From NCBI RefSeq assembly GCF_963921235.1, contig NC_086115.1, forward strand, positions 48,918,001-48,982,000: a stretch of DNA of 64,000 nt, in the 5' to 3' direction. The first letter of the stretch is position 1. Each line of letters starts with the position of its first letter. A program made the position numbers and the translations under genes. The stretch is from Mobula hypostoma (taxonomy: Eukaryota). The notes under the pieces are model-generated. The model ran no database searches, was not told the DNA's origin, and saw only the letters and a program-made list of their open reading frames with translations. Positions 36,014-61,142 of the stretch are shown here, piece after piece.

Positions 36014-36142
36014 CACTACCCTGACTAGTCTATCAGTAGTTTCATTGCAAGTAATATACATAACAAATGTATTCATAAAAACCCAAACAGCTGTTGGCTT
36101 AGAATTGGTTATTAAAAAATGTTTTTAAAAAAATTACCACCC

Positions 36143-36345
36143 AACACGCATAAAAGTTGCTGGTGAACACAGCAGGCCAGGCAGCATCTCTAGGAAGAGG
36201 TACAGTCGTCCTGACGAAGGGTCTCGGCCCGAAACGTCGACTGTACCTCTTCCTAGAGATGCTGTCTGGCCTGCTGTGTTCATCAGCAACTTTTATGTGC
36301 GTTGCTTGAAATTCCAGCATCTGCAGATTTCCTGGTGTTTGCGCG
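36143..36345 (+). mobile_element. Penelope-pLTR-derived palindromic element with a hammerhead core in the loop
   Basis: ~66-bp inverted arms around CTGACGA A GGGTCTCGGCCC GAAAC GTC; flanking duplication taccaccc. Confidence 0.85.
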
Positions 36346-43653: not shown

Positions 43654-45800
43654 AGCCAGAAGAAAGAAAATGCTGAAAAACCAAAGCAGACCAATATAAA
43701 GTACAGTGCAATTGCATAAATCTCAGGACATCGAACAGCGTGACTCAGAACTCACGCCTGGTCTGAATGTCCCAGTGCTCCCACGTGGGAGCAATCGCTG
43801 ACCCGCTCTGCATTTGCCATAGTGGTCTCCATTGGGAACTATTACTGACCGGGTCTGATTGCCGCCAACCTGGTTGGTGGCTTCCATTGCGAGCGACCGC
43901 GGACTCCCTCCGCATTCACGTCGATGCTTCAATCTTCCTCGCCGCTTCAAGATGGAGTCATAAATGACCCCGCGTCCCGTCTCCGGTCTTTTCCACAAGT
44001 CAGTTCGTGTTCTCGGTCCTTTTCGGATCCTGGTCTCTGATCTCCACGAGGCAGCTCTGCGGACACAGCAGAACACTAGGTCGTTTGATCGAGTTCCAAA
44101 CTGCACGCCACGGGCTCCAACAGTTTCCATAACACAAACAAGACAAAAAGAACAAGCAGAAGGATGGAAAAAGTGAAATAACTTAAGAGATTTAGGTACT
44201 CATTACCCTCCATGTAAAGAAGTTGCCTCTGAGATCTCTTCTAAATGTCTCTGCTCGTTTTGAACTTCCCTTTTCCAACCTGGGGAAAAGGCTAATTCTT
44301 GTAGTTATATTACTTCTCTTTCTAAAGTGTACTGTTTGTTTATATTGTTAATGGCACCGTTTCCTTCTGTTCATGATCACCTACATCATACGACACAGCA
44401 CATAACGAACAAACTATTTCCTCAGCTACTGCCAGCCTTTCAGTCAAACCGATTGTCATGTGATCACTCAATAAAAAAGACTATGATCTATCCATCATTG
44501 CAAACTGTCCTCCCCAAATCAGTTTTTACCTTCCAAATGTATGGAGATATTTTCTGCTGTTCCTGTCACTGTCTCTATTCCTTGGCTGCTGAATCTGAGC
44601 CCCTTCTTAGAGACCATCATACTTAACAGTGAGCTGAGGTTCAGGCACTAATTGGGCTATCACCTCGATCATCTCTACGTCTTACTTTGAACTTCCACGT
44701 CCAATTCTCAGTAACTTTAATGTTATCCAAAAAAGCTTCGCTACCTGCGCCATAACTTGCTGTTCACTTATTAACTTTGTACAAATTGACCTTCATTGGC
44801 AACTAATTAGCAAAGCTGCAAATTTAGTAATCTCTCTATAGCCTTGGTCTTTCCTTTCTGTTTTACTCCTATAACCCTCCAACCAGTCTGTGGTCTCTTC
44901 TTCTCTGACCGCTAGAATGTCCATGCACTAATTAATTTAATATTGGCAGCTACACCTTCAGTTGCCAAATCCTTTAAGTTCTGATATTTGCTCTGTAACT
45001 CCCCCCACCTCTCTACTTCCACCCACCTAATTTTCTCCTTGAAAATGCTCCAAAAGTCTCCTCTTTGACCACATGTCTGTTCATCAGCAATGATTACTTT
45101 CGAACAAATGAAGCAGTTCAGAGACTAAGTACATGGGGGGGGGCGGGGTGGAGGGAAGGGGTTGACACTGTATAACGTGCTCTCCAGAAGTAGCAAGATC
45201 CTAAGTCGATGAAAATGCGTTAGATCCTTTACTGAGGAATCAGCAAATATGAACTATCTTGTAACGATAAAACTAATGAAAGTAAGACTAGCAATATAAT
45301 GAGATTAACAGTCCAAGCATATTCAAATGTATTTAAGCCAAGCATTCTTAAAATATTTAAATGATAAATGAAATGGTCAACAAAAAAGCGTCATTCCTAG
45401 CTGCCTCTAACTCTAACCTGACTAAAAGCTGAGCTAAGAAAAAGCATAAATACATAACTATACTCTCCACTTCTATCACGCCCGACCCACGTGACAAATT
45501 AGCCATAATAAATGCACAATACAAAATACAATACAGACAGACATAAAATAGATACCAGGCTCCTGCACACCCATCTGTAAATATCTTCTTGGATACTTCA
45601 GCATCTATTTTTGATTTCCACTCTTTGAAGCACCTTAGAACGATTAAAAGGGTTATATTAATGAAAGCTGGTTTTGGTGTGAAACTCTGGCTTAAGTTTT
45701 TTTTGAAGTTCATCCCTGTGAGTATTGAGTTAAATTTGCACGTGGCCATGTACAAACAATGGATATGTTACAATTTGTTTGGGAAATACAATCAGTCATT

Positions 45801-45978
45801 CCCCCTCCAACTTTCAAATCCCTTACTCACTCTTCCTTCAGTTAGTCCTGACGAAGGGTCTCGGCCTGAAACGTCGACTGCACCTCTTCCTAGAGATGCT
45901 GCCTGGCCTGCTGCGTTCACCAGCAACTTTGATGTGTGTTGCTTGAATTTCCAGCATCTGCAGAATTTCTGTTGTTTG
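45801..45978 (+). mobile_element. Penelope pLTR fragment
   Basis: 8-bp TSD cagtcatt (45793-45800 and 45979-45986). Confidence 0.85.
45843..45880 (+). ncRNA. Minimal type-I hammerhead ribozyme motif (Penelope type)
   Basis: Stem I UAGUC/GACUG; core CUGACGA plus an extra A; stem II GGGU-CUCG-GCCU; GAAAC; GUC cleavage triplet ending at 45875; loop-less palindromic stem III ACGU. Confidence 0.7.
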
Positions 45979-46681: not shown

Positions 46682-46778
46682 CTTGCACACCCTGAAGCTT
46701 ATGGTGGGCTGATATTTCCCAGCCCCAGAGCAGTGGATGCTGTGAAGTTATGTTTGGCAGAAAAAGAGATTAGCGAAG
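46682..46778 (+). CDS. UROS: UROS coding exon 3
   Basis: tag|[33 protein letters not shown]|gtgagt. Confidence 0.95.
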
Positions 46779-56510: not shown

Positions 56511-56663
56511 GGCCCGTGTTGACTGTTTATTCACATCCATAGATGCTGCCTGACCTGCTGAGCAGAACGACTATGTGCAGCAGGTCCAGTCCAGTTAGAC
56601 CTGACCCATCTTCTTAACATTCACAGTTCGGAACTTTAAAAACTTTTTTCTCTTTTCTCCCAG

Positions 56664-56762
56664 GGAATTCCAGCAAGCATTACCTTTTTTAGTCCTTCTG
56701 GTGTCAGGTTTTCTTTGAAGACCATTCAAAAGTTGGCTGGAGATTCCATTAATCAAATCGAG
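56664..56762 (+). CDS. UROS: UROS coding exon 8
   Basis: cag|[33 protein letters not shown]|gtaaac. Confidence 0.94.
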
Positions 56763-56765
56763 GTA

Positions 56766-56968
56766 AACAAGAGGAATTCTGCAGATGCTGGAAATTCAAG
56801 CAACACACATCAAAGTTGCTGGTGAACGCAGCAGGCCAGGCAGCATCTCTAGGAAGAGGTATAGTCGACCCTTCGTCAGGAAGGGTCTCGGTCTGAAATG
56901 TAGACTGTACTTCTTCCTAGAGATGCTGCCTGGCCTGCTGCGTTCATCAGCAACTTCGATGTGTGTTG
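56766..56968 (-). mobile_element. Penelope-pLTR-derived palindromic element at the UROS exon 8 donor
   Basis: ~70-bp inverted arms; 19-bp TSD cattaatcaaatc(g/a)aggta. Confidence 0.88.
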
Positions 56969-57782
56969 CATTAATCAAATCAAGGTACTGTATTTGTGAA
57001 GTGCTTTTCATGTTGTAACCTGACAGATCTTAAGATCCATTTAACAAAAGCTGGTAGGTTTATTTTTTCTGAATGGAGGAGACCAAGAAGAAACCTATTA
57101 TAAAATTATGAGAGGGCTAGATGGAACAAGCAAAGATCTATTTTCCTTAGCAGAGGAATCAAAGCTGGCTGTGGGGCATGGATTTAAAGTAAACCACACA
57201 AAAATTAGAAGGGGAGAAACCCATAGGGTGGTGATGACCTGGAACTCACAGTCTGAAAGTGTGGGAGAGACTGAAACCTTTTGGGTTGAGACCCGCCACC
57301 AGGACTGGAAAGAAAGGAGAGAAGCAGTATAAAATGTTGGGAAGAAAGGGTGGAGCAAAGGCTAGAAGATGACTAGTGAATCCAGGTGAGGGGGTAAACT
57401 ACCTGGAGGGGGAAGGAGAGAGTGGGAGTGATGCAAGAAGCTGCGGGTGATAGGTGTAAGTGACAAGGAGATGGAATTTAATAGATGACAGTGCCATCTT
57501 CTTCAGCCTGAAACAAAATGGTTTAGGTACCTCTGAGGTTCAGACCTGCTCAGGTTGTTCATGTTTCCAGTAGTGTGTCCATTCTTATGAGCTTTGTGGC
57601 TTACAAGTTTCTCAGTGTACCAGGACCAAGAGCTGAGAAATGGGATTAGTGCAACTAGCTCAGTTTGTCCAACATGGACAGTGAGATGACAGGCATCATG
57701 TGTTGTACTGAGTTCTTGCAGAGATACATTTCATCTATGTTAGGTGCGACTTTGGTCATTTTGTTATGGTTTTGCTTTTCAG

Positions 57783-57902
57783 TTTGCAGCGATAGGGTCA
57801 ACAACAGCTGAAGCCATGGCATCAGAGGGACTGACTGTGAGCTGTACAGCTGAAAAACCTACACCACAAGATCTGGCAGCGTGTGTGAGAAGAGTGCTGT
57901 AG
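57783..57902 (+). CDS. UROS: UROS last coding exon
   Basis: cag|[45 protein letters not shown] at 57916-57921. Confidence 0.95.
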
Positions 57903-58074
57903 CAATGCACAGAGTAATAAATAATTGCTCATGTCTCATGGATAAAATGTATGCTTAATTGCCATCTGTCCTGACTTTGAATTGCCCTGTTTTTTTTTGT
58001 AAAATTACATTAAATCAGGATTGTTCTAGGTTTGCATTGTTTGTAAGAAAGAAATCTGTAGTGTCATCTCTTAA

Positions 58075-58289
58075 ACAAGAGAAAATCTGCAGATACTGGA
58101 AATCAAAGTAATACACACAAACTGCTGGAGGAATTCAGCAGGCCAAGCAGCATTCTTGGAAAAGAGGAAACAGTTGATGTTTTGGGCTGAAACCCTTCAT
58201 CAGAACTTGGTCCGAAACGTCGACTGTATACTCTTTTCTATAGACGCTGACTGGCCTGCCGTGTTCCTCTAGAATTTTGTGTGTATTAC
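58075..58289 (-). mobile_element. Penelope-pLTR-derived palindromic element downstream of the UROS stop
   Basis: Inverted arms; 13-bp TSD tgtca(t/g)ctcttaa (58062-58074 and 58290-58302). Confidence 0.82.
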
Positions 58290-60965
58290 TGTCAGCTCTT
58301 AATAGGATCCTCTAAATTACTTACAATATTGAGCTGGATTCTGTGAATAAATGTGTGATCAACATTACATGCAAACAGGCCAGCAACTTCAGTTGTTAAG
58401 GAGATACTCAATGAATTGTGAACCAGCAAATTGGTAGATGATTTCAGCAGATCTTTCGTTAGTCTTGCTTTAAAAACATTAGCTCATCTTTGACTCCCCT
58501 CTGTGTATCATGAGTTTGATACATTTTCACATTAACTGTTCACTGATCACACTGAAGAAAGTTTACTAATTAAGATGGTAGCCTACTCTAACAACGTGAT
58601 GAAGGTCATTGGCTACCGATCAACCTCTCTGGCCTAGAAAATGAACAACTGTAGAGTTTTATTTTGTCAAGTAGTGAATTACTGTTGGAAATTTGAAGCT
58701 CATATTTTAATTTTTAGAATTGCAATTTCTAATCCTTTGCTTTCTTTTGCTTAGTTTAATCTTTCTTTAATGTTACTTATTCCTCTTTGTGAACCTGACT
58801 TGCTACTCTGTTCTCTCACACTAATTCATCCTCCTTCTCTTGTCTTTGTTTTTTTTTTGGTTAAAGGGACACTCTTGGACCCCACCATTCACTGAGTTGT
58901 TACATGCCTGTTACCCTCAACATATTATTGACAGATTAACCTGATCGGTATTGGAAAAATTGACTTGTCCTACTAGAGATACCATCAAATTCTAACCTAT
59001 TATTTGCACAGAACTAAAAAGATTGGTTAAAATTTTCTGCATGTATAAATCACTTGGATATTGTTTATGGTAGAAATTCAAGTGGTCAAATGCATTAGGT
59101 GTGCAAAGTGGAATATACTGACTGAATTCTATTTCAAAATATCTCATTCCCTTGCTAGTTAATTGCACAAGTATAGTACATGAAAATTCCTTTCTGGGAA
59201 ATGTGTTTGGACTGTTTTCTGTATGTAACCAAATGAAATCTCACAAGTCAGTATGATGGCCACATCTTTTAAGTTATTTATATTCTTGGTATAAGGTAAA
59301 ATAATTGGCATTCAGGGCTAACTACTGTGCATGACATTGTAAGGTATTTTCATTAAAGCAATGGGCTATATATCTGATTACAACTGTAAATCTTTATCCA
59401 GAATCAGGTTAACACTGCCTTATATGATGTGAAATGTGTTTTGTGGAAGCAGTACAATGCAAAGACATAAAACTACTATAAATTACAAAATAAATAGTGC
59501 AAAAAAGGAATAATGAGTTCATGAGTTCCTTGTGATTTTCAAACACATCTTTTGTCGCATAGTTCAGAACAAAGACATGTCCATTTTGAGAAATGTTTGA
59601 TCTGAATTTTAACTCTGAAAGAAGATTGGATAGTTTCTTTTGACAGACTTAAGAGAAAAGTACCAAAAAAATTATAAAAGGCACCAAAGATAACTAACTT
59701 CTGACTTACTAGAGATGGGACATGAGTCAGACCACCAATTACCTCATCGAATACAGGTTCATCATTTCAATTTCATTTCCATTTGAACAGCTACTTTATA
59801 TTTACTGTCATCTAGGTTTCCAAGCTTCAATAAACCCACCAAGCAACAATGGCTGAATTTGTAATTTATAGCACATTTTGTAGGCTTTACAGACCAGCAC
59901 ACTCCCCCCTCCAAAATCAAAGCCCTTAAACATTTAAAATGCACATTTAGAGTTCATTTGTAGCATAGAGTCATCATTCATAAGTTTATTTTAGATTATG
60001 AGGACAGACAGTCCTCTTTTATTGTCATTTAGTAATGCATGCATTAAGAAATGATACAATGTTCCTCCAGAATTATATCACAGAAACACAAGACAAACCA
60101 AGACTTAAAAAAACTGACAAAAATCACATAATTATAACATATAGTTACAATAGTGCAAAGCAATACCGTAATTTGATGAAGAACAGACCATGGGCACAGT
60201 TAAAGTCTCAAAGTCTCTCGAAAGCCCCATCATCTCACGCAGACGGTAGAAGGAAGAAAAATTCTCCCTGCCATGAGCTTCCAGCGCCGCAAACTTGCCG
60301 ATGCAACACCCTGGAAGCACCCGACCACAGCCGACTCTTGAGTCCGTCCAAAAACTTCGAGCCTCTGACCAGCCCTCCGACACCGAGCACCATCCTCTGC
60401 TGAGCGCTTCGACCCCGGCCCCAGCAATAGGCAAACGTTTATGTTATGTTTATGATATGAAGATATCCCATGCGCCAAACAGCCTGAATGATAGGTTGTG
60501 TGTCTTGAGCAGAAACGCCGGCAGTACTAGAACACATGCACAGGATTTTGTGGTGACATTGGATTAGCCAGAATAAAGGGAAGAATCAAGAATTTAGAGA
60601 CCAAGGAGGTGGACGTTAGTGGGCTTGTTTGGCCAAGAAGAGTCTTTCATTTTCTTGACCCAAAAGTATTCTTGTAAACTAACCTAGATCCATTCCTTCT
60701 AAACTCCTTTTACGCATTGGTCATGGAAACCTTGTTTGCAAAATGGAGGCATGCAAAGATTTCACCAACCAACTTGCCTCTTACTTGCACCACCATTCAA
60801 TCTGGAACTTGACAATTTCTGGTCATTTTTGATTTTTTTTTTCTCAAATATAAGCTTCTTGTTCAACCTAACTGTTTCCTTTCTGGACTCTAAAATCACC
60901 AAGTGGATTTAAATTGCTCTTTTATTATTTGCTAAGATTAAGAAACTGCAAGACATTGTGCACAA

Positions 60966-61142
60966 ATAGGAAAAAGACTGCAGGTGCTGGAAATCCAAAG
61001 CATCGCACACAAAATGCTGGAGGAACTCAGCAGATCAGGCAGCATCTGTGGAAAAAAGTTGACGTTTTGGGCTGAGACCTTGACTGTTTACTCTTTTCCA
61101 TAGATTTGGCTTGACCTGCTGAATTCCTCCAGCATTTTATGT
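60966..61142 (-). mobile_element. Penelope-pLTR-derived palindromic element
   Basis: Inverted arms; 11-bp TSD attgtgcacaa (60955-60965 and 61143-61153). Confidence 0.82.

Follow-up and report, generated by a model that had tools for sequence, protein, structure and literature searches.

The last intron of the uroporphyrinogen-III synthase gene (UROS) of the ray Mobula hypostoma opens with a long hairpin, and a splice donor core stands on either side of it. An initial annotation of this DNA proposed that insertion of the hairpin had duplicated the exon 8 donor and had left the downstream copy as a poison donor, through which the structure might control a haem-pathway enzyme. How did the two donors arise, which one does the spliceosome use, and does the other have a function? 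We addressed these questions by computational analysis of a 64,000-nucleotide stretch of the genome (here called the window) together with orthologous loci and public contig sets.

The UROS locus

Nine UROS coding exons, assembled with the sawfish protein as guide, give an intact open reading frame of 261 amino acids in the window. Compared exon by exon, its product is 77–91% identical to sawfish UROS (one hit running into an intron was omitted), and whole-protein homology together with the intact reading frame identifies it as uroporphyrinogen-III synthase (HEM4, PF02602). The exons on either side of the intron of interest are:

56664–56762, + strand: UROS coding exon 8 (eighth of nine coding exons), assigned by translation; it ends in ATC GAG (Ile-Glu)
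57783–57902, + strand: last UROS coding exon (FAAIGSTT...RRVL, with the stop codon), behind the acceptor ...ttttcag; assigned by tblastn and RNA contigs

The translation of exon 8 matches residues 209–240 of human UROS (1jr2) with an E value of 4e-10, and the exon is further supported by tblastn with sawfish UROS and by RNA contig coverage.

The gene neighbourhood appears conserved among the cartilaginous fishes compared: BCCIP lies upstream of UROS in sawfish (L001 1–925) and electric ray (L002 1–277), and on the downstream side electric ray (L002 19869–20144) and catshark have a matrix-metalloproteinase-like gene. Several database UROS proteins from other vertebrates (P0001, P0002, P0005, P0007, P0009, P0010 and P0012) extend beyond the end of exon 8, reading ...QIK followed by intron-encoded residues, which indicates that retention of, or read-through into, the exon 8 intron is commonly captured in gene models.

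An insertion on the exon 8 splice donor

The border between exon 8 and the intron is built of three parts:

56747–56765, + strand: proximal copy of the target-site duplication, CATTAATCAAATCGAGGTA, comprising 16 exon nucleotides plus GTA, with a derived G at 56760
56766–56968, + strand: putative short, dead Penelope-like insertion, recognised by blastn family copies, fold and architecture
56969–56987, + strand: distal copy of the target-site duplication, CATTAATCAAATCAAGGTA, which keeps the ancestral ATC AAG GTA

The two 19-nt copies are identical at 18 of 19 positions, lie 222 nt apart and directly abut the 203-nt element on both sides; by our rough estimate, such a repeat pair would occur within 250 nt by chance with a probability of about 1e-7.

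We compared the orthologous UROS loci of sawfish (Pristis pectinata), electric ray (Narcine bancroftii) and whale shark, fetched via their proteins, and found the insert absent from all three. The exon/intron border (marked by a slash) reads GATTCTATTAATCAAATCAAG/GTACAGTATATGTGAAGTGG in sawfish (ATCAAG/GTACAG), ATTAATCAGATCAAG/GTAAGTAG in electric ray (ATCAAG/GTAAGT) and ATTAAG/GTACTT in whale shark, while a skate mRNA has CATTAATCAAATCAAG joined to TTTGCA (ATCAAG/TTTGCA). The sawfish border is of the form ATC AAG/gtac.. that had been predicted for insert-free orthologues. When the window was aligned to the sawfish locus with blastn, both sides of the insertion aligned, the exon side as far as 56765 and the intron side from 56970 (82% identity to the start of the sawfish intron), and the two alignments overlapped by 18 nt in sawfish, as expected if the duplicated stretch is present there in a single copy. 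Since the direct repeat that flanks the element is single at the empty sites of sawfish and electric ray, it is a true target-site duplication, and the initial annotation was right to regard the hairpin as an insertion and the 19-bp repeat as its duplication.

The distal copy retains the older sequence: it equals the skate mRNA over all 16 exon nucleotides and sawfish apart from the first base. AAG occupies positions -3 to -1 of the donor in sawfish, whale shark and electric ray, which upholds the proposal that AAG/gtactg, 222 nt downstream of the present border, is the ancestral donor.

The inserted element

In the UROS intron copy, an antisense 3'-end fragment that includes a 36-nt tail (56766–56801) precedes a tailless sense fragment. 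The arms of the copy (56794–56874 and 56895–56975) are 81 nt each and 89% complementary. RNA folding gives a stem of about 76 bp between 56800 and 56969, with an energy of -154 kcal/mol as against -70 ± 5 for shuffled sequences (z = -16.8), close to the stem of about 70 bp that had been noted between the two donors. The right arm contains no counterpart of the tail segment, whose sequence is that of the 3' end (45941–45976) of a single copy found elsewhere in the gene:

45800–45976: single-arm, non-hairpin family copy in UROS intron 2, with an intact CTGACGA...GAAACGTCGAC core and a 36-nt tail

The basic unit at this position reads ...CCTGACGA-AGGGTCTCGGCCT-GAAAC-GTCGAC...GATGTGTGTTG, then the 36-nt tail CTTGAATTTCCAGCATCTGCAGAATTTCTGTTGTT, and it is useful as a reference unit for the family. 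By blastn, further copies in the window lie at 36142–36339, 58075–58289 and approximately 60978–61059.

Penelope-like retroelements can occur as an inverted 5'-truncated copy adjoining another, with an extension of 30–40 nt at one end only (PMC8557442), and the minimal hammerhead of their terminal repeats is a CUGAYGA...GAAAC-GUCGAC core without helix III, two such motifs often lying on opposite strands (PMC4209133). The UROS intron copy has this architecture of inverted 5'-truncated copies with a one-end tail of the right length, and the minimal core pattern occurs in sister copies at 36211–36238 and 45848–45875, where 0.05 matches would be expected by chance. On architecture and core motif, we provisionally assign the element to the Penelope-like class as a truncated insertion; no full-length coding element is attached to any of the family copies examined.

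We also considered whether the intron contains a self-cleaving ribozyme. The minimal hammerhead core pattern is absent from the UROS intron copy on both strands, and the possibility was rejected. Both cores appear to have been destroyed through truncation at the apex or internal deletion, and the right-arm core carries extra base changes. Rfam searches of the whole window at the gathering threshold found no hammerhead and no other family, and searches of two copies at E values up to 10 again found no hammerhead and returned only generic hairpin matches to microRNA models. Minimal hammerhead forms lack helix III (PMC4209133). With the cores destroyed and no Rfam hammerhead, self-cleavage of the UROS pre-mRNA is not expected.

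The preceding intron contains a further 20-nt piece of this repeat (AGATGCTGCCTGACCTGCTG) at 56541–56560, about 100 nt upstream of exon 8. The piece is complementary to hairpin positions 56829–56848 and is covered by a very large number of repeat-derived contigs.

A second copy of the family carries a duplication of its own:

58062–58302, + strand: second family copy with its duplication, in the UROS 3'UTR; the element proper occupies 58075–58289

The duplicated sequence is 13 nt long (58062–58074, TGTCATCTCTTAA, and 58290–58302, TGTCAGCTCTTAA; 12 of 13 identical), and the site is empty in sawfish L001, which has a single TGTCATCTCTTAA. Together with the 19-nt duplication in the intron, this suggests that duplications of 13–19 nt are a property of the family. 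As mRNA contigs extend into the 3'UTR copy, to 58100 or beyond, with no loss of exon depth, the mature UROS mRNA probably carries a 215-nt foldback.

Age of the insertion

Contig sets of three organisms bear on the age of the insertion: organism A, which word share identifies as the window's species, organism B, which is diverged by about 2%, and organism C. The insertion or its junction words are present in both DNA and RNA of organisms A and B. The junction words were not found in organism C, by a weak test that uses 5 words. The arms of the element have diverged from each other by 11%, mostly through changes at CpG sites, which makes the insertion an old one and not a recent one. From this distribution, the insertion appears to have occurred after the sawfish lineage had split off, in an ancestor shared by the window's species and a close relative. 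Within the intronic copy, organism B carries an A>G change at 56970, which is what sequence free of constraint would show.

The ancestral codon before the intron

The single difference between the two copies of the duplication changes a codon: the exon has GAG (Glu) and the intronic copy has AAG. Lys precedes FAAIG in each of 16 aligned sequences from sharks, rays, chimaera, bony fishes and turtle; of the 157 vertebrate UROS proteins retrieved with the motif, 155 have Lys there, 2 have Gln and none has Glu. The suggestion that the duplication preserves the ancestral codon, with Ile-Lys in the intronic copy and Ile-Glu in the exonic one, is therefore borne out by the protein record. The G at 56760 is found in RNA contigs of organisms A and B. 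The organism C mRNA contig matches up to 56759 only, which implies that its base at 56760 is not G. The AAG-to-GAG change does not resemble an improvement of splicing, since G is less favoured than A at -3.

At five columns with a conservation of at least 95%, the window's UROS has a different residue: T62P, K125N, P144V, K222E and P228S. Sawfish also departs at three of these columns, with the same residue at K125N and P228S and Leu instead of Val at P144; it has six such departures of its own. We read K222E as an ordinary lineage-specific replacement, for which a fill-in error at integration would be the alternative.

Another unusual residue is located in UROS exon 3 (46682–46778), which encodes Pro at the position of the GLIFTSPRAV motif that is Thr in 98% of vertebrates. 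Neither this Pro nor the Glu of exon 8 (56760–56762; 99% Lys elsewhere) was seen in any other protein sampled. The reading frame with both replacements is intact and expressed. The human UROS changes T62A and I219S, the latter next to the Lys, are porphyria mutations. Literature searching yielded no relevant information on what the human Lys (K220) does.

Splice donor usage

The two candidate donors of the last intron are:

56760–56768, + strand: functional splice donor GAG/GTAAAC, supported by RNA joints; the element's first bases supply positions +4 to +6 (AAC)
56982–56990, + strand: probable fossil of the ancestral donor, AAG/GTACTG, 222 nt inside the intron; no use among the joints listed

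RNA data were taken as Logan contigs rather than raw reads, and such contigs drop rare isoforms. The RNA-like runs are contig sets of 62–241 million letters, compared with about 2,400–2,850 million for DNA runs of the same organisms; in run X1 the depth is about 720–810 over exons and about 38 over the intron, so the small runs behave as RNA. Runs X1 and X3 derive from organism A, X5 from organism B and X9 from organism C.

In X1, X3 and X5, exon 8 is joined to the last exon by a joint from 56760 to 57781 with two ambiguous bases, equivalent to 56762/57783, so placed that the skipped sequence begins with GT and ends with AG. Its depth equals exon depth (810 in X1, 84 in X3 and 421 in X5), making it the major form in all three runs, and a 2,393-nt mRNA contig of X9 has the same junction. 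The 56762-to-57783 junction that the initial annotation asked to be looked for is thus present in all four runs, and these joints establish the upstream donor GAG/GTAAAC, which takes positions +4 onward from the element as had been read from its sequence, as the functional one.

The distal donor gave a different picture. No 56984/57783 joint occurred among the 15 joints listed for the four runs (42 weaker joints lie outside that list), a set in which repeat-derived joints appear at depths of 12–100 and exon depth is 84–810. Unspliced contigs (X1 rec7, 56922–57810; X5 rec22, 56937–57810) cross the distal donor without a branch. We lean towards the view that this donor is used not at all or only rarely, low-level use being possible since rare forms are dropped from contigs and depleted by nonsense-mediated decay (NMD). 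Complete disuse, the outcome that the initial annotation had set against its own proposal, is therefore an outcome towards which the RNA contigs lean.

Strength of the two donors

With a rough, approximate matrix of textbook frequencies, the proximal donor scores 2.5 bits and the distal donor 0.04; with A at -3, as first made, the proximal donor would have scored 3.4. The U1 duplex energies are -6.9 (proximal) and -6.5 kcal/mol (distal). The ancestral donor lacks the consensus +4A, +5G and +6U in both sawfish and the distal copy of the window, and the whale shark donor lacks +4A and +5G and has U at +6. From these scores and sequences, the ancestral donor appears to have been weak, and both present donors appear weak and of similar strength. 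Because the rebuilt donor is at least as strong as the old one, and frame and protein were left unchanged, the insertion was plausibly near-neutral at birth.

By the textbook proximity rule, the downstream donor could compete. Local pairing of the two donors was also computed; the outcome depends on the context chosen, and it was discarded as evidence.

Origin of the present donor and alternative readings

We consider it likely, with a probability of roughly 0.8, that a Penelope-like insertion rebuilt the donor through its own duplication, so that the proximal copy is used, the distal copy is a fossil and the arrangement has no regulatory role. A heavily truncated inverted-pair Penelope-like insertion would have integrated three bases into the last UROS intron, and staggered cleavage of the target followed by fill-in would have duplicated a 19-nt stretch, namely the 16 bases at the exon end and the GTA that follows them, as a result of which there are now two donor cores. 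The upstream copy would have stayed on the exon, taken AAC from the element as its +4 to +6 and become the donor of the spliceosome. The downstream copy, with the original intron behind it, would have been left as a stranded fossil 16 nt past the base of the stem of about 76 bp. The change from AAG to GAG (Lys to Glu) in the exonic copy may have happened later or during fill-in, with the intronic copy keeping the ancestral codon.

The poison-donor model holds instead that a fraction of transcripts uses AAG/GTACTG, adding 222 nt that include a stop codon and sending the product to NMD, with the stem tuning the level of UROS. The stop codon concerned is:

56823–56825, + strand: TGA, the first in-frame stop beyond the proximal donor, 159 nt before the distal donor

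The TGA is real, and its distance agrees with the figure of about 160 nt before the last junction that had been given for it; use of the distal donor would place it more than 50–55 nt upstream of the last exon junction, the layout expected of an NMD target. The distal donor is moreover intact, of a type that works in relatives (GTACTT in whale shark, GTACAG in sawfish) and similar to the proximal donor in U1 duplex energy, and NMD would keep its product scarce, which makes absence from the contigs weak evidence. Use of the site in RNA is nonetheless what the model needs, and no such joint was among those listed for the four runs, in contigs that drop rare forms, although repeat-derived joints of modest depth were; unspliced contigs pass 56984 unbranched. 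Nor does the distal copy bear a sign of selection: zero changes in 19 nt is the expectation under drift, organism B has its A>G change within the copy, and the same element family is scattered through the window as junk. We regard a poison donor as unlikely, and structure-dependent control of this haem-pathway enzyme, as originally put forward, has no support in the available data.

A stronger version would make the stranded donor a working NMD-coupled decoy set by the 76-bp stem, with the Lys-to-Glu change at -3 as part of a re-balancing of the two donors. We consider this version very unlikely. If it were true, a haem-pathway enzyme would have come under a new post-transcriptional brake in a ray lineage through a Penelope-like insertion.

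More doubtful still is the reading in which the hairpin, as double-stranded RNA in the intron, lowers UROS without involvement of the distal donor, by editing, by Drosha/Dicer processing or as a retention signal. The stem is long (about 76 bp) and nearly perfect, it has generic sub-threshold matches to microRNA precursor models, and unspliced RNA amounts to about 5–9% of exon depth. Those matches, however, are far below gathering scores and typical of any hairpin, the level of unspliced RNA is unremarkable, and the depth over the element is swamped by other family copies, so that editing and small RNAs are unreadable there.

An origin of the repeat by misassembly or by chance, with no real insertion, draws only on the general risk that palindromes pose to assemblies, and this reading is refuted by RNA contigs of two organisms that cover the right arm, distal copy and intron, by junction words in DNA runs of two organisms, and by empty sites in two other species that bound the insertion to the base.

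Comparison with known systems

The inserted element can be set beside short one-tailed head-to-head Penelope-like insertions that carry minimal hammerhead motifs. The UROS intron copy shares with them two inverted 5'-truncated 3'-end fragments, a tail of 30–40 nt (36 here), a variable target duplication of more than 10 bases (13 and 19 nt here) and, in its sister copies, the CUGAYGA...GAAAC-GUCGAC core. It differs in that both of its hammerhead cores are destroyed and in that it sits exactly on the splice donor of an essential gene.

SR protein genes exemplify unproductive splicing coupled to NMD by poison exons or donors, and the known cases are conserved and demonstrably used. The UROS alternative donor resembles them in that its use would introduce a premature stop codon upstream of the last junction by more than 55 nt. 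In contrast to them, no use was detected among the joints listed and there is no conservation beyond drift, and the UROS insertion alone does not show a new kind of regulation. It does offer a natural pair of competing weak donors split by a strong stem, which can be used for testing rules of donor choice.

Transposon insertions at exon–intron borders can alter or supply splice sites, as seen with Alu, L1 and SVA disease insertions and with exonised elements. Like these, the UROS insertion is a mobile element that supplies working splice-site bases and leaves an alternative site nearby. Unlike them, it is fixed and tolerated: its target duplication regenerated the donor, splicing position and frame are unchanged, and the old donor persists as a dated fossil. 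The duplication rebuilt the donor, and an essential gene thereby withstood an insertion right at its splice site; the distal duplicate is a dated fossil of donor and codon alike in their ancestral state. The UROS case is a well-resolved example of a known event, a splice-site retroelement insertion rescued by its own target duplication, and it shows how the intronic half of a donor can be supplanted by a mobile element while the protein frame stays as it was.
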